From Syncephalis fuscata S228 (taxonomy: Eukaryota; Fungi; Zoopagomycota), in NCBI GenBank assembly GCA_025786725.1, contig JAHLTZ010000013.1, positions 310,001-374,000 on the forward strand: a DNA stretch of 64,000 nt, in the 5' to 3' direction. The translations under genes and the position numbers were made by a program. The first letter of the stretch is position 1; each line of letters begins with the position of its first letter. A model generated the notes under the pieces. It saw only the letters and a program-made list of their open reading frames with translations, did no database searches and was not told the DNA's origin. This document shows positions 782 through 31,901 of this stretch, piece after piece.

Positions 782-2228
782 TTATCCAGGGCGCTGCCCC
801 GTGTATACATAGTATCTTACATATGGCTTGGTTATCTCTATCTCTTTTTCCCATTCCTCAACCAATGACGGAACTTCGTTTGGTCCAAAAAGACCCGCTT
901 GAATTGCACCAGGAGCAATGACACTGGCAATAGATTTGACATCCAATAGCATTTGCTGACCTATTTTCCCGCCCCAGAGGCCTAAAGGTACGTCATACGC
1001 CCGCGTAGTCACCTGCATAAACCCGGCGTCGGTCAATTTTCCGTCTAGCTGCTGAATTTTGGTTGGATCGCAGTTCCGCATAGCAAGCAGTTTTCGTGCT
1101 ACATCAGTCATTCGGTTACTGATTGGACCGCCTTGTCGATAGAAAGCATCCCATTCGACTATTTCAATCCAGCCTCCAGGACAAGTGACACGGTAAACTT
1201 CTAATAGCAAGGTTTGCCATTTGTTCGTTGGAATAAATGCCAACTGGAAGCGGATGTGCACATAATCAAAAAGCTCAGATGCACAGTTAAGTCCTGTAAA
1301 TAAACAGTGTTAAATATGCCAAAATAGTATAACTTTTTCTATACCTTCGAGTATGTTCATAGACTCAAATCGACAATTAGGGGGCATTGTACTTTGCGGA
1401 TAGCATGCTTCTGAATCTACTCCAAGAAATAATGTGTTTGGAAAATCGGTCGCCATTTCCTATTAATGACCATTAGTAAATCAAAACTTTAGCTACAATA
1501 GCCTACCAGTGCCCAAACACCAGTGCCAGTGTTAATATCCAATGCACGCTTTACATTGTCGAATGGTACAAAATAATTGCGTCCAAATATTGTGTTCATT
1601 AGATAATGTTTATTGCTTTCACTATAATGCATTAAATTTAGATATTGCTCCAGTGTTATTATTAAATAGAAAAGCGTAATTACCGTGCCATTTCATCCTG
1701 AGTTCTTGGTACAAGTACGCCGTTTTCTGCTATAGAGCGTAGGATACTTGTATCGTCTAATGGAGTTTGCCCATGGCCTTCATCTAGTTCCGTATCTATC
1801 TCGTAATTTGTTGATGCCGAACTCTTTCGTCGAGGTGTTGCTGGTACTGAATAGGCACTTGCCCTTGGCGAACCAATAAAATGCTCTAACGATCGTGTTT
1901 TTCGGTGTATAAAATTGTAGAATTTTGACTTGTTTGGCCTATATAAATCATCTTTATGATCTCTTCTTTCTTGTTCTTCTGGAATATCACCTCGATCGTC
2001 CAACCATGCTTGCAAGCTAATGCGGGTCTCAGGACTTGAATATCGTCGTGATCTAGTTGTTGTACCTGGATTTTGAGGCTGTATGTCCAGTGCCGAGGTA
2101 TCATCCGAGTTATATCGTCGCTTAATTCTTGCTAGAGAGCTACTAAAAGATCCACGCCGAGCAACTACGGGCTCGCTTTGTGTTGAAGATTGACTTTTGC
2201 GACGTGCTTTTGAATGGGGTGCGCCCAT
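782..2228 (-). CDS. LaeA-like class I SAM-dependent methyltransferase with long disordered N-terminus (multi-exon)
   Basis: Spliced exons give MGAPHSK..., RALDINTGTGVWAL (motif I), EMATDFPNTLFLGVDS, FDYVHIRFQLAFIP..W..LLLEVYRVTCPGGWIEIVEWD and VPLGLWGGKIG. GT-AG introns link ORFs 1680-2228 and 782-1261. Confidence 0.85.
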
Positions 2229-3093
2229 GTTAACACAAATAGGCTATGCTTTTTAGTGAGCAAAATGCAAAAAGGTTTGTAGAGTACAACGTTAGTTTGA
2301 TTGTATTATTAAAGCGACAGTGTAAGTTACGTAGTAAAGAAAAGAAGCAATGAAGTGTTTCACATCTGTTTATAAAGCTACTTGCATATGAAACCGTCGT
2401 CGATCAACTGGTACACAAAAGAGAAACCATAAGTTCCGAATGCCGCTCAGTTGAGGCCGGTGTAATTACCACCCCATAATGCAAATATAATAATTATTCG
2501 GTCGTCACCATGCTGTAAATAATGGTAATTGCATTAAGCTATGGGCAGCACTACTAGGAATCTATTGCCAATATATTTATACTATGTTCTTATAGTCGAG
2601 TAGCTATGAATTGTTGTATGATTATTTAAAATAAACAATTTAAACCATTATTTATTTACTTAATTATTTTATCCAACGCTCGTCTTATAGCAATAATTTC
2701 TATTTAATATGATACATCATATCAACTAATTACTGGTCTGATATATAATATTGCAATGTATCGTCATTGACAAGAAACTAAAGACATAAATGGCAGTGAA
2801 AATTATTATGTCTGCATATGTATCTATGTGCTTAATGAAAAAAAGAAATAGACTAAATTGAGCTACACAGTAAATATAGATAACAATAAACAGCTAGTTT
2901 TTACAAATAAATTATACTAAAATATTGATAAAATATTTATCATTGGTGCAATGTTAAGATGATTAGATAAAGAAGCTGAGTAAAATGGTTAATTTAGTTG
3001 TAGTCTTATTAAGTTTAATTTTTTAATGTTTGCAAAAAAGCTATGTTTATTTAAATAATAAAATGATGCATAAATGATAATATGATGTTACAA

Positions 3094-4433
3094 AACAAAT
3101 GACTAAATGACGTACCGTAATTCTATTCTTGTTGGATACAAGTATTTTTGAATATATATTTATTAAAGTATTCCATGTAAACTGTACGAGCAAACAAATA
3201 GTGAAAATAATGCTTGCTGCGTATCTACATTGCTAAATACTCGGAATGGCCGTCAGACATAATTATAAATTGCAATAGCACTGTACCATTACGCATAAAA
3301 CACGCAGCACTGATATTTACAAATTATTTAGCCAACCACATGTATTGCTAGTTTACTCCGCACAGCCATGGAGACAGTATGTATATGTTGGTTTGTATAA
3401 ATCATCTGCAGTTCCATGCAGCATCCAACTAGTGAAAGCTGTATAAACAATACTCGATTTACCACCACATCCACATCACCTCGGATATAAACAACATACC
3501 AATTGCAATTCCTATGCTATCCATACACCAGACAATTATCAATGCAATTATACAGATAAACACCTAGAAAACACCATATTCATTAAACAGAACACTAGTC
3601 AGCTATGTGCAGTCTAACATCATTTGCAGCATGTATTCAACATGCCACAAAACCATATAGTATCTAGCTGACTATATATCTGTAAGTACTCGCATGGTAA
3701 AAGACACAAATGCACTACACTTCACATGGCAATTTACTTAATTTAATTGTGTTAAACTGTAGGCAGTAATAATCTTGTAATTTCCAAGTGTATAACAATA
3801 TAAAATATAGTAAGCAATAGATAATGGCAAGAGAAGATAAAAGCATAATGCTTGGTTTAAAAACAACAACAAAGCTGGCTTATATTGTGGCAATAACGAA
3901 ACTTTTACAACAAAACATGACACCTAATACCACCCAAGATAAATGTACTACGCAATTGGTCTTCAACATGAATAGCTATAGACAATATTTGATAAATCAT
4001 ATGTTTTTTCCGTTGAAAGACTCCTTGTTTATTTGTAATACAGATCATATTTACTGCTATCTTCCATATCAGCCGCACATCAGTGCTAGCAATATTTGTA
4101 TAGTATAATAAACTGGTCAATAGCATTTGTACTATATGATTCTGCCGATTAAGCATAAAAGATGATCCATACTAAACTTGTATGCACAGCATAGTAGATA
4201 GCTTTGTTTCCCTAGTAATGCCAATTATAATATTATTTAAATTAATGCCGATCATTTAAACAATATGCAGCATAATTCACCGGCACTAGCCTTCATTTAG
4301 TGTTGCCTGTAAACATTTATAATACATCTTGATAATCTATTTGTTGCATAATAATACAATTTATTTAAATGTTTTTATACCAAGTTGTATCTATCCAAAT
4401 TTATTTAACACAACTAAAAACATTAATAAATGT
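3094..4433 (+). repeat. Repeat A (~1.34 kb), near-identical inverted copy at 23643-24978
   Basis: Reverse-complement match read by eye. Identical short ORFs appear on opposite strands (3824-4108 vs 23963-24247; 3905-4156 vs 23915-24166). Confidence 0.95.
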
Positions 4434-5707
4434 ACTGACAACTCAGCTTGACTTTCTACTTCATTAAAATAACTGACATCATTTGCTTTATTATTCCTGA
4501 CCTGTATTAGACGTTTCACAATACCATAATGTTGGTTTTTTTATATAGCCTTAAACAATATATAAATCTTTCACTGCGTAACATTTACATCAAAGTAATG
4601 AGAAGATAACTTTATAAATGTTACCAATTTTATTTTCATATTATAACTTCATTTAATTTTAAAATTCTATTGTTTTGGCAAAAGCTAGTAGAACAAATCT
4701 AAAATTATTCAAAATTATGTCAAGCTAATTATAGAGCAATAAAACTTAACCATGTTGTTTCCCATTATAGATAATAAATAAAGCAAAGCTTTTTGTAAAA
4801 TTTAAACTAGCCAATAATATTTGGCATTAATGTTATTGCCGTTTTTAGCTATATTCTCATGAGGCATTTCACACGACTAGCAATGGCTAATGATTCACAT
4901 GATGCTCAAGTATAGCTATTAAACATGTTTGTTAGTGTTATTATTTAATATAAATTAAGGCACATAGCATTGAATTGTTATAAAAAATATTGATTTGAAT
5001 ATTACGTATATTTTATATGCTTTATAGCATTTAAACCCAATGTCTGACTTTTTAAGCTTATTCTACAACATGTAAATATGAAATTTTGTCATTTGTCTTT
5101 TTAATGCTAGGTTGTATTTGGTATTTAATTAAACAACATTTATATTTAAAAAGCAGCCAAGCCCTGTGCGACCGTGCAGCTGATCGGAAATGGAAATAGA
5201 AAAACCAGCTAAATTATTGGTAAAGAAAATAATTTTATTTTATTGAACTTGCCAGTACTTTGTCTTTTTGGAGCTATTGCCAGGAGACAATTGAATGTGG
5301 TATAAAATTATTTTATATAGTAAATAAAAATTAAATAAACACAATACTTTTGTGCAGTATATGTGTATAGTAGCAACAATAATAAATTTTATACGATCCG
5401 GCTACTAATTAATAATTCAGTTATCTGATTTGGAATATTGGAATAGGATAAACTTTTGAACAATAAAGGCATTTTTCCAACGCATTTTCTATCGTCTGAT
5501 AGGAAAGTCCAATTTTATACATGCCATTTTTGTATAGATCTATTTGCGCATCAACAGCGTAGATATAGCGCAGCTACAATATAAATAAGTTTATTTTTTG
5601 CTGTAGTCAAAGTAACTCATCACAAAAACCAAGCTCTTTATCTAACACACTGTTAATAATTGTATCCAAGCACATAATTGTTTATTTTAATTTAACCAGC
5701 AATCACT

Positions 5708-5896
5708 ATGAAGTTCTCCGCCGCTATCTTTGCCATCGCTGCTCTCTTGGCCGTTACCGTCTCGATCGAGGCCGCTCCAGGATTTACTAAACCACCTACT
5801 GCTGGGGCACCATGCGTTATTGGCACGCCACCCGTTGGACAACTTGAGTGCAAGGATAATGGCGATGGCACCGGCAACTGGGGCTGGCATTACTAA
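5708..5896 (+). CDS. Small secreted 62-aa peptide (signal peptide plus ~40-aa Gly/Pro-rich, two-Cys mature peptide)
   Basis: MKFSAAIFAIAALLAVTVSIEA|APGFTKPPTAGAPCVIGTPPVGQLECKDNGDGTGNWGWHY*. GC-rich island with coding-like codon usage in AT-rich flanks; TATAAATA about 125 bp upstream. Confidence 0.8.
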   Translation: MKFSAAIFAIAALLAVTVSIEAAPGFTKPPTAGAPCVIGTPPVGQLECKDNGDGTGNWGWHY

Positions 5897-6283
5897 ATGG
5901 TTGCTGTAAACTGCCCTTGCAATAGTTTACTGACCATTAAATAATGCTCAAGGTCAATCCATATATAAGCAATGTCTATACTTGACTATAAAATCTTAGT
6001 TTTAATAATAAATTGCTTGTATTTTCTATAAATATACTACTACCACTATCTCTTTAATGGCTATTGTTTTGTTTAAACTTACTCGCCTTATCTAAACGTT
6101 AGCGATTATTTGGTAATTGCTTACTTCAATAAAACATAAAGGCGATGCTATTATAAAGTAAATAATAAATATCTATTTTTTTAATTATTAATCATTGCAG
6201 TTAACCTTTTAATAACTGAATAGCACTTGTAATTATTTTTTTTAAAAATAAATATAAAACTAAAAATAAGATGATGTTTATTA

Positions 6284-7084
6284 TTATTTAAATAATTTAG
6301 TAGCAATATATATGTATATATGTATAAAACTTGTTGAATAGTGCCATACTACAAATACTGACGACAATTTACACCATGTTCACTACTATTGGCAATACTA
6401 TTATTGGCATATCTACTAGAACATATAAATGATATGCTGCAAAACAAAGTGACAAATAGAAGTTTGTGGATAGTGTTGCTGAAACTACAGTGTGCACGAC
6501 TCTTTGAACAAAACGAGTGATAAGAGTTGAGATTTGCAATTAATAAAAACAGTATCAAATAAACAGCGGTTTTAAACAAAGCAGTATTATTTAGACATAG
6601 GATGGCATAGAGAGTGGCCAATAAGCAAAGCAGTGTATGAATAGTGGTGTTAGCATTATAGTGTGCTTATATGTATAAGCCAATGAACGGATGAGTCGAG
6701 ATTTACAGATTATAAAGCTAGAACAAGCGAACAACTGTAATAATTAGCGCGTATTTACCAGACAATAAAATAATATACATATAATGAATATGCAATACTG
6801 AATAACAATTAGCGTTATTAAAGTTATTGGGCATATGTGCATGAGCAGACTACTGATATTGGTTAAAATTTACTAAGAGTAAAGATAGAACAAAGTAAAA
6901 GCAGTATTGGATAGGGGAAGGCTAGGAGAATATACAATGGGAAGAGTATGACAAGTAATGTTGGTGTTATAGTGCATATAAAATAATGAGTAGAGTAAGC
7001 AAATTATATTGTAGCATATAATAAATAGAATGTATCTAGTATAATATAGAATAATATAGATAAATAGACTATATATGCATACTG
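6284..7084 (+). repeat. Repeat B (~0.8 kb), near-identical inverted copy at 26854-27654
   Basis: Reverse-complement match; identical 90-aa ORF at 6349-6621(-) and 27317-27589(+). Confidence 0.95.
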
Positions 7085-7142
7085 CATTAAATACTTTAAA
7101 GTTTTTTATTTATAGAAAAATGGTCTTGTATAAATAATTTAG

Positions 7143-7222
7143 CACAAGCACTATTTGACACCGTAGACTGCAGTCAACTAAAAATAATTGACTTTAATAT
7201 ATAATGGCAAATAGTGCTTGTG
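7143..7222. repeat. 80-bp foldback with perfect 15-bp inverted arms
   Basis: CACAAGCACTATTTG (7143-7157) pairs with CAAATAGTGCTTGTG (7208-7222); inner AGTCAA/TTGACT pair. Confidence 0.75.
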
Positions 7223-7346
7223 GCAAAAAATTGCCATAAATTCTTAATCGTTTTTTAATATAAATATAGCTGTAACCAGTCTACCACACAGACAAACGCC
7301 TCATAGTACAATGATACTTTTTTAGTGTAATTTTCTCGCTGACTAT

Positions 7347-8757
7347 TTACCGATGAGCGGTATGAATAAAAACATTACCGTAGCATCGACTAGTATCAAC
7401 TTCATTTTGCCACTCAGTTATGAGCAGCGTGAAATCAATTTCATTAGTTAGACCTATATCGAGCAGTAATGGTTTTAACATAGCCAATTGAGCAAGAAAA
7501 TCGCTTTGAAAGAGCCGGCCCACATGACCGCCCCAATCACCGCATGGCAACGAAACAGTAATGCAATTAACGCCAAAAAATCCGGCCTGAGTAAGCATGT
7601 CAGTTAGTCGATGTTTCGCATCAACATCTATACCGATATAGTCAGCCAATCCGCCCAATAACTGATTTATTTGGTGACCGGCCGGTCCCACCGATTCTAA
7701 TTGAAATGCAAATTCGGTCATTTGTAATACACCCTCTACCGCAGTCGTTGCCAATAGATCACGGCAAACAGATGACCACGACTCGGCTGGCATACTAGTA
7801 GCAAGAAATCGACAGTGAACAAAATCAAATGATGTTGCTAAAGCACTTAGACCCGGCTCTATGATTACCAGTAATTAATAGTCAGTTAAACAATTATTAT
7901 TGACACTTATCCTGACAAAGTGCACCTACCTTCGGCAATATCTAGGACATAAAACGTGCAGTTTTTTGGCATTACCGTTGTTGGAAACTGTGACGATTTG
8001 TCGATACCAACACATGCAGCATCAGGCCATTCCATGGCAACTTCCTAAGAATCCACATGAACACGCATAGACACCATTGCTGTATTAGTAAGCTGTTATA
8101 ACTATTCTCCCTGTCCACCACCATGATCGCTATTACTACACAAATATACACCACACGTATATATATATACTTATATCACACTTACCATTAACCAAGTGCC
8201 AGCACCAGTGCCAACATCCAAAATCGACCTTGGTTTACCAAGTGGCACAATATAGTTATTGCCGATAACATAGCGCAATGTAGCATGCATGCGATTAACC
8301 AAATCCAATTCATCCTCGTCGGGTAAAATATGTTGTGACGACCGTTTACTCGATGATGACAGGTGCTGGCCGGTAACACAGAGACAATGTGCTTTGTTGT
8401 TGGATCCTCCATGCCATTCGTCCTTTTTTTACCACCACCATCATGGCTCGCCTTTTCTTCCTCCTCCTCCGCCTCCTCTGCCCCCTCCGCCTCCTCTTTT
8501 AGACTCGTTGCCGTGTTGGCACGAGGTCGTGTCATTAAGCTGCCGGTTGAACGATGCCGAACCACCGTAGCTGTTGCGCCACCTGACCCCTTTAGATACC
8601 AATGTTCCAAGCTACTATGGCGACGCAATGTAGCGGTGGCTGGTCCAACATCGCTTGATGATTTTTGTAATCGATGGGATCTAATAAAACTCGATACGGG
8701 ACTTGACTCGCCGTAGACATCAGAGTCTCGCTTAAATCTGCCATGCTTGTTCCCCAT
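7347..8757 (-). CDS. LaeA-like SAM-dependent methyltransferase, paralog 2 (one apparent frameshift near 8350)
   Basis: MGNKHGRFKR..., LPDEDELDLVNRMHATLRYVIGNNY..PRSILDVGTGAGTW, EVAMEWPDAACVGID, FDFVHCRFLAS, LPCGDWGGHVG. Confidence 0.85.
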
Positions 8758-27654: not shown

Positions 27655-27828
27655 AAACTAGGCTGTTCTAATATTATATATTTATTTATTATTAGTATAT
27701 TCAGGTAATGTGGTCACAAAGTGTATTAACAAAGTGTAAAATATACGAACTGCATATGTTGAAAAATCAAATCATTTGAATAAAAATGTAACTTTTCGCG
27801 TTATTTTTATCTAACTATTATTGCAACT

Positions 27829-28795
27829 ATGGAAGATTACTACGATATTGATAGCATTCTTTCAGAACAGCAGGTATAGTTATAGTTTCTGTGTAGTATA
27901 ACAGCCTTTACTGAACCTATTATTGTTTAACAAATGCTTATAGAGAATTCCTTGTGAGATGATAATTGAAGGAACCCAACTTGGCTTTCTTGACAACAAT
28001 CCAGGCGAGGACGTGAGTATTGAGCGTTGTATCAACAATATATTCGCCTGAACCTGTTCTATATAGATACCTAAAGGGTCATTGGTGGAATTACCACTAT
28101 GGCTGGCTGGTATATTAGTTATGAGGTGGGTGAATGTTTGCACTGCTAAACGAATACTGACAATAGCACAATATTAAGCGAGCAAGTCGATATTAACATG
28201 CCCAAAGCTTACGGAAACTCCGTGCGTAGCAGCATGAAAGCATCAACGGCCAACATTGACCTACAACGACTTGGTCCTTATTATTATCTATTTGGTGGCA
28301 AGTTAACCAACATGTATCCTTACTATAAGCAATGGTCGCTATTACATTAGTAGATGATTAGATAGATAGATTTATTAGAGTAATTGATTTAATTCGAATT
28401 TATTACTATTAGTATAGATGACGTGGATCTACAGAAACTATTGGCAAACACCTTTCGTGAACGTCTTGGTTTAATTATGGACTATGCTCATGGCCGTATG
28501 GGAGCCGAACAAATGGCCATGTTTACACGGATGGATCACACAGAACGCGATTGTAAGTAACATTATTATTATTAATAACAATATACCGCCTTCTATTACT
28601 ATTAATACTAATGCTATAATGGACAGTGTATCGTATTGGACAACACAGTGCCAATTTATTCCAGCGATGGCATCGACGTGAATTAGATCACGAAGAGGGA
28701 TTGGAAGGATCGGCCATTTCAACAGCACTGGTAACAACACCACTCAAGCGACCAGCTTCTATGATGTAACACCGTCAGAATATGCTATTCAGTAG
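27829..28795 (+). CDS. PSF3: GINS complex subunit Psf3
   Basis: MEDYYDIDSILSEQQ|RIPCE..GFLDNNPGED|IPKGSLVELPLWLA, ANIDLQRLGPYYYLFG, LANTFRERL, MDHTERDLYRIG..FQRW. Built from small exons that the ORF track misses. Confidence 0.9.
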
Positions 28796-29053
28796 AAGTG
28801 AAGGAAAAAGTATGGTCTTTTGTATAGTTATAAAATAGCCAACATGGGTGAGACCCTTGTCAAATTAGAATAAATAGGCCATTAGTTGGTGGTAATTATT
28901 TTTGCTTTTTATCTTTTCTTTCTCTTCTTCTTTACTATTATCGTTTTTACTTGTACCTATATCTATATCTATTCTGTTACTTTTGCCGTCTATTAACAAA
29001 GACTATGTTGTGTAAGTCCCCTGCTGCTGGTTTATGCTATGATTGTTTATGTC

Positions 29054-29142
29054 GATGGCTACGATGATTAAAATACATTTCAAACTAGAGTATCTGATGG
29101 GCTACCATGCCTTTTGATTACTTTTTTTTCTACTGAGCCATC
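29054..29142 (+). ncRNA. snR78: Box C/D snoRNA snR78 (25S Um2421 equivalent)
   Basis: Terminal stem GATGGC/GCCATC; box C ACGATGA; guide TCAAACTAGAGT complementary to LSU ACUCUAGUUUGA; D' CTGA 29094 places +5 on the U of GAC-U-CUAG; box D CTGA 29133. Confidence 0.9.
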
Positions 29143-29300
29143 TACATCATCATATCATTTGATTTGTATATGTGCAAGATTGCTAACAACTGTTACTATT
29201 GACTATAGATCTCTATCTGAATGTATGATGGTCAATGGTCTTCCATGGTGTCTATAATGTAAGTTATTGTAACTATATGCATGCGTTTTGCCATTCTATC

Positions 29301-29385
29301 TGTCATATGATGATTTATCAATCTAAGTTGGAATTACCGTCCGAAATTGTTATGAGGATATGATTGCGGCTGATAACTGATGACA
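29301..29385 (+). ncRNA. snR77: Box C/D snoRNA snR77 (18S Um578 equivalent)
   Basis: Stem TGTCA/TGACA; box C ATGATGA; guide TGGAATTACCG complementary to SSU CGGUAAUUCCA; D' CCGA 29341 places +5 on the U after G577; box D CTGA 29377. Confidence 0.92.
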
Positions 29386-29551
29386 TTTGTTGTATTCACT
29401 TCTGTGTGTATGTCATTGAACAATTTACTAATTGAAGATGTTTATAGTAGTCCAAGATATGCCTTATGGTCTTTTTATACATGCTACTTTGTATATAATG
29501 ATGGTAGGTACCTGTTGAGTGTGCATGTATGGCTGTGTATATAAGAGAATA

Positions 29552-29644
29552 TGAAAATGATGACCAGCACTGGGCACTGAATAACAGTGATGCCAAAATG
29601 TGTTATGCCACCAACACTTTGACATTATGGTGGTTCCTGATTCA
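29552..29644 (+). ncRNA. snR76: Box C/D snoRNA snR76 (25S Cm2197 equivalent)
   Basis: Box C ATGATGA 29557; guide AGCACTGGGCA complementary to LSU UGCCCAGUGCU; D' CTGA 29577; C' GTGATGC; extra element CACTTTGACATT complementary to AAUGUCAAAGUG; box D CTGA 29637; extended stem AAGAGAA/TTCTCTT. Confidence 0.93.
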
Positions 29645-29812
29645 CATTTTCTCTTAAACTGTCAAATCGGTTATTGTTGAATAGTAATAATAGCATTTAT
29701 GCTAACCATTTACTATGTTGTAGATATACACTATGGCTGTAGCCATCGTCTGCTGGATCAATTAATACACTATGGTGGTAAGTAACTAGTCTATTGTATT
29801 GCTTTTTCTTTT

Positions 29813-29904
29813 TGGATGTGATGAGCCTTTAGATGACGAGTCTGATTTGAGCTTCTCAATGATTACTCCACTTTTATTTTACATTCATGCAACCTTCTGA
29901 TCCA
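29813..29904 (+). ncRNA. snR75: Box C/D snoRNA snR75 (25S Gm2288 equivalent)
   Basis: Stem TGGA/TCCA; box C GTGATGA; guide TTAGATGACGAG complementary to LSU CUCGUCAUCUAA; D' CTGA 29842; extra element CATTCATGC complementary to GCAUGAAUG; box D CTGA 29897. Confidence 0.93.
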
Positions 29905-30052
29905 TTTACAACTATCTCTTTATTCTGTATTGCTCTACCGTAATCAGTTATACTAATGAATGTTTTCTAGATGTATTATGACATGCCATGCTGGCTATCA
30001 AGTAAATTGGTTTAATTACTTGGTAAGTAGACATTCGGTCATACTTGTAAAC

Positions 30053-30128
30053 ATGTGCAGATGATGTATTTCTATTTGACAAGCATATATCTGCATCTAT
30101 TGTGGACAATAAATAGTCTGATGCGCAT
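30053..30128 (+). ncRNA. snR74: Box C/D snoRNA snR74 (18S Am28 equivalent)
   Basis: Stem ATGTGCA/TGCGCAT; variant box C ATGATGT; guide GACAAGCATAT complementary to SSU AUAUGCUUGUC; variant D' CTGC 30091 places +5 on A28; box D CTGA 30118. Confidence 0.88.
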
Positions 30129-30288
30129 TGTTTTGCATGTAACCTTTTAAATATTAGCTTTGTTGCTAACACTGGCTTTATAGCTGTAACAATGATGCTC
30201 TTTATGATGACACCGAAAGTGGACTGGCCGCTATTATACAGGGTAAGTATCGAGTGGACTGTACAAACAAGAGATAATATATAAAAGT

Positions 30289-30371
30289 TGGAATGATGAG
30301 CTCTTTATTCACGACGGTCTTATGATAAACATAATTATGATTCAATGGCCTGTTTGGCATTTTCTGATCCA
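30289..30371 (+). ncRNA. snR73: Box C/D snoRNA snR73 (25S Cm2959 equivalent)
   Basis: Stem TGGA/TCCA; box C ATGATGA 30293; guide TCACGACGGTCT complementary to LSU AGACCGUCGUGA; D' ATGA 30322 places +5 on the first C of GACC; box D CTGA 30364. Confidence 0.92.
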
Positions 30372-30525
30372 TCTTTTATAGATTAAAAGATTAAGAAATG
30401 ATATGGATGTGTGTGTGTGGGATGGCTATTGTTTTATTAATAGTATACTAACCAACACTCATTGGCAATTATTAGTGTGTGCAAGCTATTTTATTATTAA
30501 ATTATTATATTCACTATTTTCTTGT

Positions 30526-31901
30526 CTACTGTGTATTTTCTTCAGCTTCTTCAGCTCTTATTTTAGCCTCTAATCTGGCTCGTTCTGCTTGTCGCATGCG
30601 CATAAGTGTTAATGTTTCATAGTCGTTAGATGATAGTTTTGGTGCACTTGTAAATGAGAATGACTGCAATGGTACAAAATGTCAATTAAATTGTTGCTGA
30701 TGATAAGTACTATTGTATGTATTTATCACATATCTTACCTTGACTCCTGTTGTTTTGTTGCTTTCACCTGATTCCTTTGGCAAACCAGAAGCAGGTGGCG
30801 TTTGCTTTAGTTGTTGTACCAATGCTGGTTCCTCGCCACCAGCCCAACTTAATGTAAATGGCTCCAAGGGTGAATCTGGTAGATCTGCTTTGGTCATAGC
30901 GGCATGCTAAAGTTGTTATACAGATTAGCTTACAATTGCTAATACGTGTGCCATCCATTACTAACCGCTCCGTTGATTGTTTTAAATGCAACTAAAGCAC
31001 TTTTCTTCTTTTTTGTCGATATTAATACATGTTCTAGTTCGCCGTAATGTCCAAACAACTTGGTCAAACTCTCCTCTGTAAATAATTGTTTTTTTAATTT
31101 ACAACGCACTTTTAGCGTTGTATCAGTATCCTCTAACCATCATTGTTGTTATGTGGCAATACATTATTATATACTCGTTCACTTACTGGATGCTACCGTT
31201 TCCGACGCTGCTGCTTTATTAGCTGCAGCTACTCTAGCCGATTCTTCCCGTTCATGCTGTTCCCGTTCTAGTCTTGCCGCATCAGCCTGTAGTCTCGCAA
31301 CCTAATAAACCATTACATTTTGCTATAAATGCTGTATTACTATATAATATAGCTACACTACTTACCTCGGCCCACATACGAGCTTCCTCTTGTTTCGCTT
31401 CAGTTTTTTGCCGCTTTACATCTTCTTCTCGTTCTTCCAGCTCTGTAATCGTGCTGTGTTAGTCACTATTCTAAAAAGTCTTTGCAAACAAAGTAAACAA
31501 ACCTCTTTCATACGCTGTCGCTCTGAATCCATAGCAGCCGTGCGCTGCGTTCGTTTGTGCCGAGCGGCATGAATGTTTAGATATTTTCGACGTGTTTCCG
31601 GATCCTTTAGTGCCTCGTAGGCCTTGGTCAGCTTTAGAAATATCTTAGCTACTCAGCAAATGTGCAATCATGCACAGTAGTTGGTTAGTTGTATTGAAAT
31701 GCTAAGCAGGCGTGCTGATAGCACTAAGTGTGTGGCCGTACGATAACAGCATTGAATTCGTAACTTACCCGCTGCATGATCATTCGGATTCTTGTCAGGA
31801 TGATACCGCAGAGCTTTACTGCGGTAGGCGCTACGTATAGCACGCTCATCCGCGTCCGCCGTCACCTCCAGTAAAGCAAAGTAATCACAGGTCTCCTCCA
31901 T
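30526..31901 (-). CDS. CWC23: J-domain plus RRM spliceosomal co-chaperone Cwc23/DNAJC17
   Basis: DYFALLEV..IRSAYRSKALRYHPDKNP (HPD motif), coiled-coil, TLKVRCKLK..LTKLFGHYGELEHVL (RRM-like), C-terminal DYETLTLMRMRQAERARL. Confidence 0.85.

Follow-up and report, generated by a model that had tools for sequence, protein, structure and literature searches.

The likely fungal snoRNA gene cluster I of Syncephalis fuscata, with six box C/D snoRNAs inside a spliced host gene

In the 64 kb stretch of DNA analysed here (the window), 1.6 kb without a long open reading frame (ORF) lie between a PSF3-like gene on the plus strand and a convergent DnaJ/RRM gene on the minus strand. An earlier reading of the letters alone, the first-pass annotation, flagged this "intergenic" stretch, which protein-centred annotation would leave empty. 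The analysis places there, at window positions 28982–30560 of the plus strand, a host gene that encloses six small nucleolar RNAs (snoRNAs) of the box C/D class, 76–93 nucleotides (nt) in length. We put at roughly 0.88 the probability that this locus represents, in S. fuscata, the fungal "snoRNA gene cluster I", carried by a single-copy, non-coding, UHG-like host gene of the RNA polymerase II type. In the 29.4 Mb assembly the snoRNA host locus is present in a single copy.

A 369-amino-acid ORF of the window is 98% identical to a protein of Syncephalis fuscata, and its next matches, at 44–50%, come from Basidiobolus, Mucorales and Glomeromycotina. By this measure of protein identity the organism is S. 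fuscata, a mycoparasitic fungus of the order Zoopagales (Zoopagomycota), or a very close relative, and hence an early-diverging fungus. The proviso under which the first-pass annotation had drawn its evolutionary inference, namely that the DNA comes from such a fungus, can therefore be dropped.

Each of the six snoRNAs has a C box of the RUGAUGA type (consensus form), a CTGA D box and a terminal stem of 4–7 base pairs (bp), and each lies alone within its intron or predicted intron, as the first-pass annotation had described. All are on the plus strand:

29054–29142, plus strand: sno1, putative counterpart of snR78 / U52 / snoZ157; C box ACGATGA, D' box CTGA at 29094, D box CTGA at 29133, 6-bp stem.
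29301–29385, plus strand: sno2, putative counterpart of snR77 / snoR77Y; C box ATGATGA, D' box CCGA at 29341, D box CTGA at 29377, 5-bp stem.
29552–29644, plus strand: sno3, putative counterpart of snR76 / SNORD88; C box ATGATGA, D' box CTGA at 29577, D box CTGA at 29637.
29813–29904, plus strand: sno4, member of the snR75 / U15 family; C box GTGATGA, D' box CTGA at 29842, D box CTGA at 29897.
30053–30128, plus strand: sno5, putative counterpart of snR74 / U27; C box ATGATGT, D' box CTGC at 30091, D box CTGA at 30118, 7-bp stem.
30289–30371, plus strand: sno6, putative counterpart of snR73 / U35; C box ATGATGA, non-consensus D' box ATGA at 30322, D box CTGA at 30364, 4-bp stem.

A conserved non-consensus D' box is documented for yeast snR73 as well (PMC3116282). 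The Rfam models were scanned at their gathering scores over the whole window and with E-value reporting over positions 28500–31000. At gathering scores snR75 is the single family found in the 64 kb, while E-value reporting places C/D families at six evenly spaced positions, all on the plus strand:

29052–29144, plus strand: snoZ157, clan CL00063, 28.1 bits.
29301–29388, plus strand: snoR77Y, clan CL00057, 47.6 bits, E-value 1.8e-07.
29549–29647, plus strand: SNORD88, clan CL00071, 34.5 bits.
29816–29902, plus strand: snR75 (RF01185), clan CL00045, 58.8 bits against a gathering score of 40.
30056–30125, plus strand: SNORD27, no clan, 28.3 bits.
30049–30133, plus strand: SNORD121A, no clan, 29.6 bits, on the same snoRNA as the SNORD27 match.
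30291–30348, plus strand: SNORD35, clan CL00056, 20.5 bits, a weak match.

In a yeast-like environmental cluster (L045, considered again below), Rfam finds snR78, snR77, snR76, snR75 and snR73, which are the yeast members of these same clans, and the family that matches at the snR74 position is again SNORD27. The clans together with the guide targets described next confirm the snR78-to-snR73 order that had been read from the letters. A seventh match, to an snR72 unit (in yeast the guide for 25S Am876), was absent from 28500–31000. We also considered an snR72-like second guide in sno1 and rejected it: the D-side element of this snoRNA is a U-rich tract, and its matches in ribosomal RNA (rRNA) are U-rich and full of G-U pairs.

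Evidence for the identity of the six units also comes from pairing with the organism's own rRNA. The ribosomal DNA (rDNA) was taken from the same assembly (L004) and delimited by Rfam, with the small subunit (SSU) gene at 1201–3179, 5.8S at 3466–3618 and the large subunit (LSU) gene at 3968–7705. The 20 nt 5' of each D' box were compared with all of the own rRNA (5.9 kb), with 500 shuffled versions of each guide as control. For each D' guide the best match in all rRNA is a single site with 11–13 Watson-Crick bp, where the class calls for at least 10, that covers position 5, the position at which the rule places the methylated nucleotide, and shuffled guides equalled the score of the real guide in only 1–7 of 500 trials each. 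The sites are as follows, in the organism's own numbering:

sno1: LSU U2751, counterpart of yeast Um2421; 12 Watson-Crick bp.
sno2: SSU U589, presumed counterpart of yeast Um578; 13 Watson-Crick bp of 15.
sno3: LSU C2527, counterpart of yeast Cm2197; 11 Watson-Crick bp.
sno4: LSU G2618, counterpart of yeast Gm2288; 12 Watson-Crick bp.
sno5: SSU A28, counterpart of yeast Am28; 12 Watson-Crick bp.
sno6: LSU C3300, presumed counterpart of yeast Cm2959; 12 Watson-Crick bp.

The first-pass annotation had assigned exactly these six yeast sites by counting from the D' boxes, and rather than failing on the organism's own rRNA all six guides pair with it. In yeast the sites are assigned to snR74 (Am28), snR77 (Um578), snR76 (Cm2197), snR75 (Gm2288), snR78 (Um2421) and snR73 (Cm2959) (PMC5199042). 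The spacing of the LSU targets, 91 nt from 2527 to 2618 and 133 nt from 2618 to 2751, equals that of yeast positions 2197, 2288 and 2421, and A28 carries the same number as in yeast. U589 and C3300 we take to be yeast U578 and C2959, matched by their local context in conserved rRNA sequence rather than by an alignment with yeast; the shifts in number, from 578 to 589 and from 2959 to 3300, are due to insertions in the own rRNA. The own 18S gene is 1979 nt long, compared with 1831 positions in the model, and that of the LSU measures 3738 nt (L004, G000:C187). Small contigs that carry rDNA units number at least three (C75, C187 and C202).

Three of the snoRNAs show further complementarity beside their target. 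An accessory element of sno2 (29366–29372, 7 nt) pairs with SSU 580–586, one of sno3 (29615–29626, 12 nt) with LSU 2537–2548 just 3' of the target, and one of sno4 (29882–29890, 9 nt) with LSU 2637–2645, again just 3' of the target. Experiments in yeast have demonstrated that accessory rRNA pairings stimulate methylation by snR76 and snR75 (PMC3116282), and the pairings of sno3 and sno4 match those of these two yeast snoRNAs, which lends further support to orthology. The D-side element of sno3 (29617–29636) also forms 11-bp, G-U-rich duplexes with SSU C1098 and LSU C3301, most likely by chance, although a second target is conceivable. Taken at the level of boxes, guides and targets, the data support sno1 to sno6 as functional counterparts of snR78, snR77, snR76, snR75, snR74 and snR73, in this order, with methylation of the corresponding sites as the prediction.

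The host gene is divided as follows:

28982–29011, plus strand: exon 1 of the putative non-coding host; an RNA contig starts at 28982 (5' end uncertain), with 30 nt on the short side of the joint 29011 to 29209.
29012–29208, plus strand: intron 1, 197 nt; GTAAGT...TGCTAAC...TAG; GT..AG joint in an RNA contig.
29209–29258, plus strand: exon 2, 50 nt; each of the three frames has a stop codon.
29259–29447, plus strand: intron 2, 189 nt; GTAAGT...TACTAAT...TAG; GT..AG joint in an RNA contig.
29448–29503, plus strand: exon 3, 56 nt; bounded by RNA contig joints.
29504–29723, plus strand: intron 3, 220 nt; GTAGGT...TGCTAAC...TAG; joint in an RNA contig, and an unspliced contig over 29538–29738.
29724–29777, plus strand: exon 4, 54 nt; bounded by RNA contig joints.
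29778–29970, plus strand: intron 4, 193 nt; GTAAGT...TACTAAT...TAG; joint in an RNA contig, and an unspliced contig over 29761–29980.
29971–30022, plus strand: exon 5, 52 nt; bounded by RNA contig joints.
30023–30183, plus strand: intron 5, 161 nt; GTAAGT...TGCTAAC...TAG; joint in an RNA contig.
30184–30242, plus strand: exon 6, 59 nt; a contig piece begins at 30183/30184 after the fifth joint.
30243–30475, plus strand: predicted intron 6, 233 nt; GTAAGT...TACTAAC...TAG; splice signals only.
30476–30560, plus strand: predicted last exon; provisional 3' boundary, overlapping the 3' untranslated region (UTR) and the end of the coding sequence of the DnaJ/RRM gene.

The RNA data consist of one small public run in the form of assembled contigs of long RNA, and the label RNA is itself a guess; since the contigs lack the introns of genes on both strands, we regard the run as complementary DNA. 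One contig of 1216 nt contains the joints 29011|29209, 29258|29448, 29503|29724, 29777|29971 and 30022|30184, all of them GT..AG, and these five are the exact predicted borders of introns 1–5. By arithmetic on the depth table, unspliced contigs are absent over introns 1, 2 and 5, whereas over introns 3 and 4 they occur at about one quarter of the depth. All six intervals have a branch site of the form TGCTAAC, TACTAAT or TACTAAC 14–24 nt 5' of the TAG acceptor. The distance from the snoRNA's 3' end to the 3' splice site is 55–79 nt in introns 1–5 and 104 nt in the sixth interval, and the measured range of 55–104 nt agrees with the one given in the first-pass annotation; from the snoRNA 3' end to the branch A there are 41–61 nt in introns 1–5. 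Thus, of the six canonical introns with intervening exons of 50–59 nt proposed there, all six have their signals and the first five are spliced in RNA, while splicing of the sixth was not seen.

The unspliced contigs over introns 3, 4 and 6 could be taken to mean that an RNase III of the Rnt1 type excises the snoRNAs from a precursor that has not been spliced, splicing being incidental. The SNR72–SNR78 cluster of S. cerevisiae is established to be processed in this manner, by Rnt1 and exonucleases. For the present locus we consider such a route very improbable: the dominant contig has five precise GT..AG joints, every intron holds exactly one snoRNA at a constant 41–61 nt from the branch point, and the terminal stems are short (4–7 bp), unlike the long stem-loops of the Rnt1 type.

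Another reading would do without a separate gene altogether, with the snoRNA introns lying in a long 3' UTR of the PSF3-like gene or with the spliced RNA encoding a small protein. In its favour, the PSF3-like gene shares the strand and its end lies about 120–220 nt upstream, and the exons have frame-tracked open stretches of about 50–65 codons. On the other side, AATAAA occurs at 28869 after the PSF3 stop, and the depth table yields no contig that bridges 28860–28981, which is consistent with an independent transcription unit beginning a little before 28982. Exon 2 is closed in all three frames, and the longest open stretch of about 50–65 codons was judged exon by exon. Moreover, blastn of 28800–30700 revealed no similarity of the host exons to any of the 80 related metagenome loci described below. 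We give this reading little chance, and closed frames and spliced RNA together support a non-coding host, as the first-pass annotation had claimed. Just 5' of where transcription of the host is first seen lies a long pyrimidine-rich tract (28890–28980), which is reminiscent of the 5' terminal oligopyrimidine (5'TOP) starts of vertebrate snoRNA host genes.

The sixth interval deserves separate treatment. The only contig over it is unbroken through 30183–30663, beyond which it goes on into the minus-strand gene, across four introns with CT..AC borders. The predicted last exon of the host overlaps the DnaJ/RRM gene in its 3' UTR and at the end of its coding sequence, and both transcripts were assembled into one contig. 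One contig does contain exons 1–6 joined and then the sno6 interval, as co-transcription would produce, although contigs cannot prove one molecule from end to end. These data allow for a host with five intronic snoRNAs and one exonic snoRNA, in which sno6 would lie in a 3'-terminal exon or retained intron and be released by endonucleolytic entry, or by 3' end formation, and exonucleolytic trimming. In favour of such an arrangement, the contig is unbroken over 30243–30475, whereas introns 1, 2 and 5 have no unspliced contigs and those of introns 3 and 4 reach about one quarter of the depth; the predicted 3' splice site is 104 nt away from sno6, as compared to 55–79 nt for the other five; ATTAAA occurs at 30382, just 3' of sno6; and there is a precedent in CD6, an exon-encoded snoRNA of Neurospora cluster III (PMC2780460). 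Against it, the splice signals of the interval are perfect, with GTAAGT as donor, TACTAAC as branch site and, 24 nt past the branch A, TAG as acceptor, and Luo et al. (2013, PMC3596301) describe every snoRNA of the cluster as intronic in species of zygomycetes, basidiomycetes and euascomycetes. Furthermore, the contigs are without strand and drop rare isoforms, so that an unspliced contig is no proof that intron 6 is never spliced. Overall, an exonic sno6 appears possible but rather unlikely.

We therefore return to the copy of cluster I with an intronic layout as the preferred reading, and several points weigh against it. Five of the six Rfam matches lie under their own gathering score, with sno6 at just 20.5 bits. 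The RNA contigs give neither strand nor transcript ends and leave out rare isoforms; a joint of exon 6 to exon 7 was not found among them, and intron 6 appears only unspliced. The mature RNAs of 76–93 nt and the methyl groups are predictions from the features above.

According to the preferred reading, the primary transcript of the host is spliced and each intron carries one box C/D snoRNA; the joining of exons 1–6 is observed in the RNA contig. The steps that follow would be those established for intronic C/D snoRNAs, which is the reason we propose them here. The proteins of the small nucleolar ribonucleoprotein (snoRNP), namely fibrillarin, Nop56, Nop58 and Snu13, would assemble on the C/D motif in the precursor RNA, about 40–60 nt 5' of the branch point, the excised lariat would be debranched, and exonucleases would then trim it back to the protein-protected snoRNA, leaving the spliced exon RNA as a by-product. 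The source of sno6 may be either a terminal intron that is spliced slowly or the transcript's 3'-terminal part. The mature snoRNPs would 2'-O-methylate A28 and U589 of 18S and C2527, G2618, U2751 and C3300 of 25S rRNA (own numbering). No new mechanism is implied, only the ordinary route of intronic C/D snoRNAs.

The layout itself is already known. Luo et al. (2013, PLoS One, PMC3596301) defined snoRNA gene cluster I as snR78-77-76-75-74-73-72, present in nearly all the fungi they analysed, with all its snoRNAs intronic in non-coding hosts in Euascomycetes, Basidiomycota and the zygomycete Rhizopus oryzae; snR76 is absent from the cluster of R. oryzae and Schizosaccharomyces, and snR72 is absent in most species. 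Spliced UHG-like hosts were confirmed in Neurospora by reverse transcription PCR (Liu et al. 2009, BMC Genomics, PMC2780460). The same order and intronic layout are thus published for Neurospora, Rhizopus, Basidiomycota and Euascomycetes (PMC3596301, PMC2780460). A text search of the literature found no report of a snoRNA cluster for Zoopagomycota. Mitrovich et al. (2010, Science) are said to be a further source on fungal cluster I in introns. What is new here is a member from Zoopagomycota that keeps all six units including snR76.

The Syncephalis locus shares with fungal cluster I the same families in the same 5'-to-3' order over about 1.5 kb in total, one snoRNA per intron, short non-coding internal exons with canonical splice signals and, as in most fungi, the absence of snR72. 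It differs in that it retains snR76, which R. oryzae and Schizosaccharomyces do not have, and in that its last unit was not seen spliced and overlaps the 3' end of a convergent gene. Compared to Euascomycetes, in which snR78/72 is a double guide, sno1 is a single guide. With the SNR72–SNR78 cluster of S. cerevisiae it has in common orthologous guides and targets, the order and the accessory rRNA pairings of snR75 and snR76; the yeast cluster, however, is intronless with snR72 at its 3' end, whereas the Syncephalis units are split by spliced exons. The vertebrate hosts UHG/SNHG1 and GAS5 resemble it as non-coding spliced genes with one C/D snoRNA per intron about 40–60 nt upstream of the branch point, the sixth intron of Syncephalis being a predicted one, and U27 (SNORD27) likewise resides in a multi-snoRNA non-coding gene. 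Vertebrate hosts have a 5'TOP start, as opposed to only an upstream pyrimidine-rich tract in Syncephalis. To our knowledge they hold a different snoRNA set, and we know of no gene order that is common with animals.

For the history of the cluster, we consider it probable that the six-gene order with one snoRNA per intron predates the split of Zoopagomycota, Mucoromycota and Dikarya, that the absence of snR76 from Rhizopus is a secondary loss, and that in Syncephalis the last unit may no longer follow the route that depends on splicing. In the reconstruction of Canzler et al. (2018, PMC5824354) the cluster formed at the root of Ascomycota; like the Rhizopus locus, the Syncephalis locus speaks against this placement, and if our reading is true the cluster did not form there and is among the oldest conserved non-coding gene orders in fungi. 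The first-pass annotation had dated the layout to near the base of terrestrial fungi. Its premise of an early-diverging organism holds, and the inference itself had largely been pre-empted by the R. oryzae report (PMC3596301). Until now a single zygomycete, R. oryzae, stood behind the ancient origin of cluster I; the present locus supplies a second, independent lineage of early divergence, and would make snR76 a part of the ancestral cluster. It also provides Zoopagomycota with a snoRNA host gene with RNA confirmation of five introns and with six guides that were tested against the organism's own rRNA.

We looked for environmental relatives by scanning metagenome contigs with the 16-nt snR75 guide and D' box, which returned 80 loci. 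Further cluster guides in the order 78-77-(76)-75-74-73 and with a spacing of 200–300 nt, like that of Syncephalis, are present in 34 of these. A close relative of the window was absent among the 80, and blastn of 28800–30700 aligned only the snR75 unit. A splice-signal heuristic applied to the environmental clusters did not discriminate, acceptor-like signals being almost as common on the reverse strand; for the snR73 unit it found both signals in 10 of 18 loci versus 3 of 18 in the control, which is only a hint.

Several of the 80 loci were considered individually. The low content of guanine and cytosine (GC) had suggested L045, L084, L040 and L023 as possible early-diverging fungi; L045 is a budding-yeast-like cluster with 78–101 bits to yeast families, and L084 and L040 resemble SNORD15. 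L023 is no snoRNA locus: the 16-mer matched by chance within a bacterial array of clustered regularly interspaced short palindromic repeats (CRISPR), with 20 repeats of Rfam CRISPR-DR7. In three related contigs (L034, L044 and L079) a guide of the snR76 type is located some 1.6 kb upstream of snR78 and not between snR77 and snR75, which may be a rearranged cluster or a chance match with one mismatch.

The two genes that flank the host are the following:

27811–28768, plus strand: gene similar to PSF3, a GINS subunit, directly upstream of the host; stop near 28766.
30526–31901, minus strand: gene with a J-domain and an RRM (Cwc23/DNAJC17-like), convergent to the host; stop codon at 30526–30528.

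In the PSF3-like gene, RNA contigs contain GT..AG introns at 27872–27941, 28013–28066, 28124–28176 and 28553–28626, and a further intron is likely at about 28345–28440, where all three frames are closed. The introns of the DnaJ/RRM gene at 30664–30738, 30907–30965, 31133–31186 and 31300–31363 are likewise borne out by RNA contigs.

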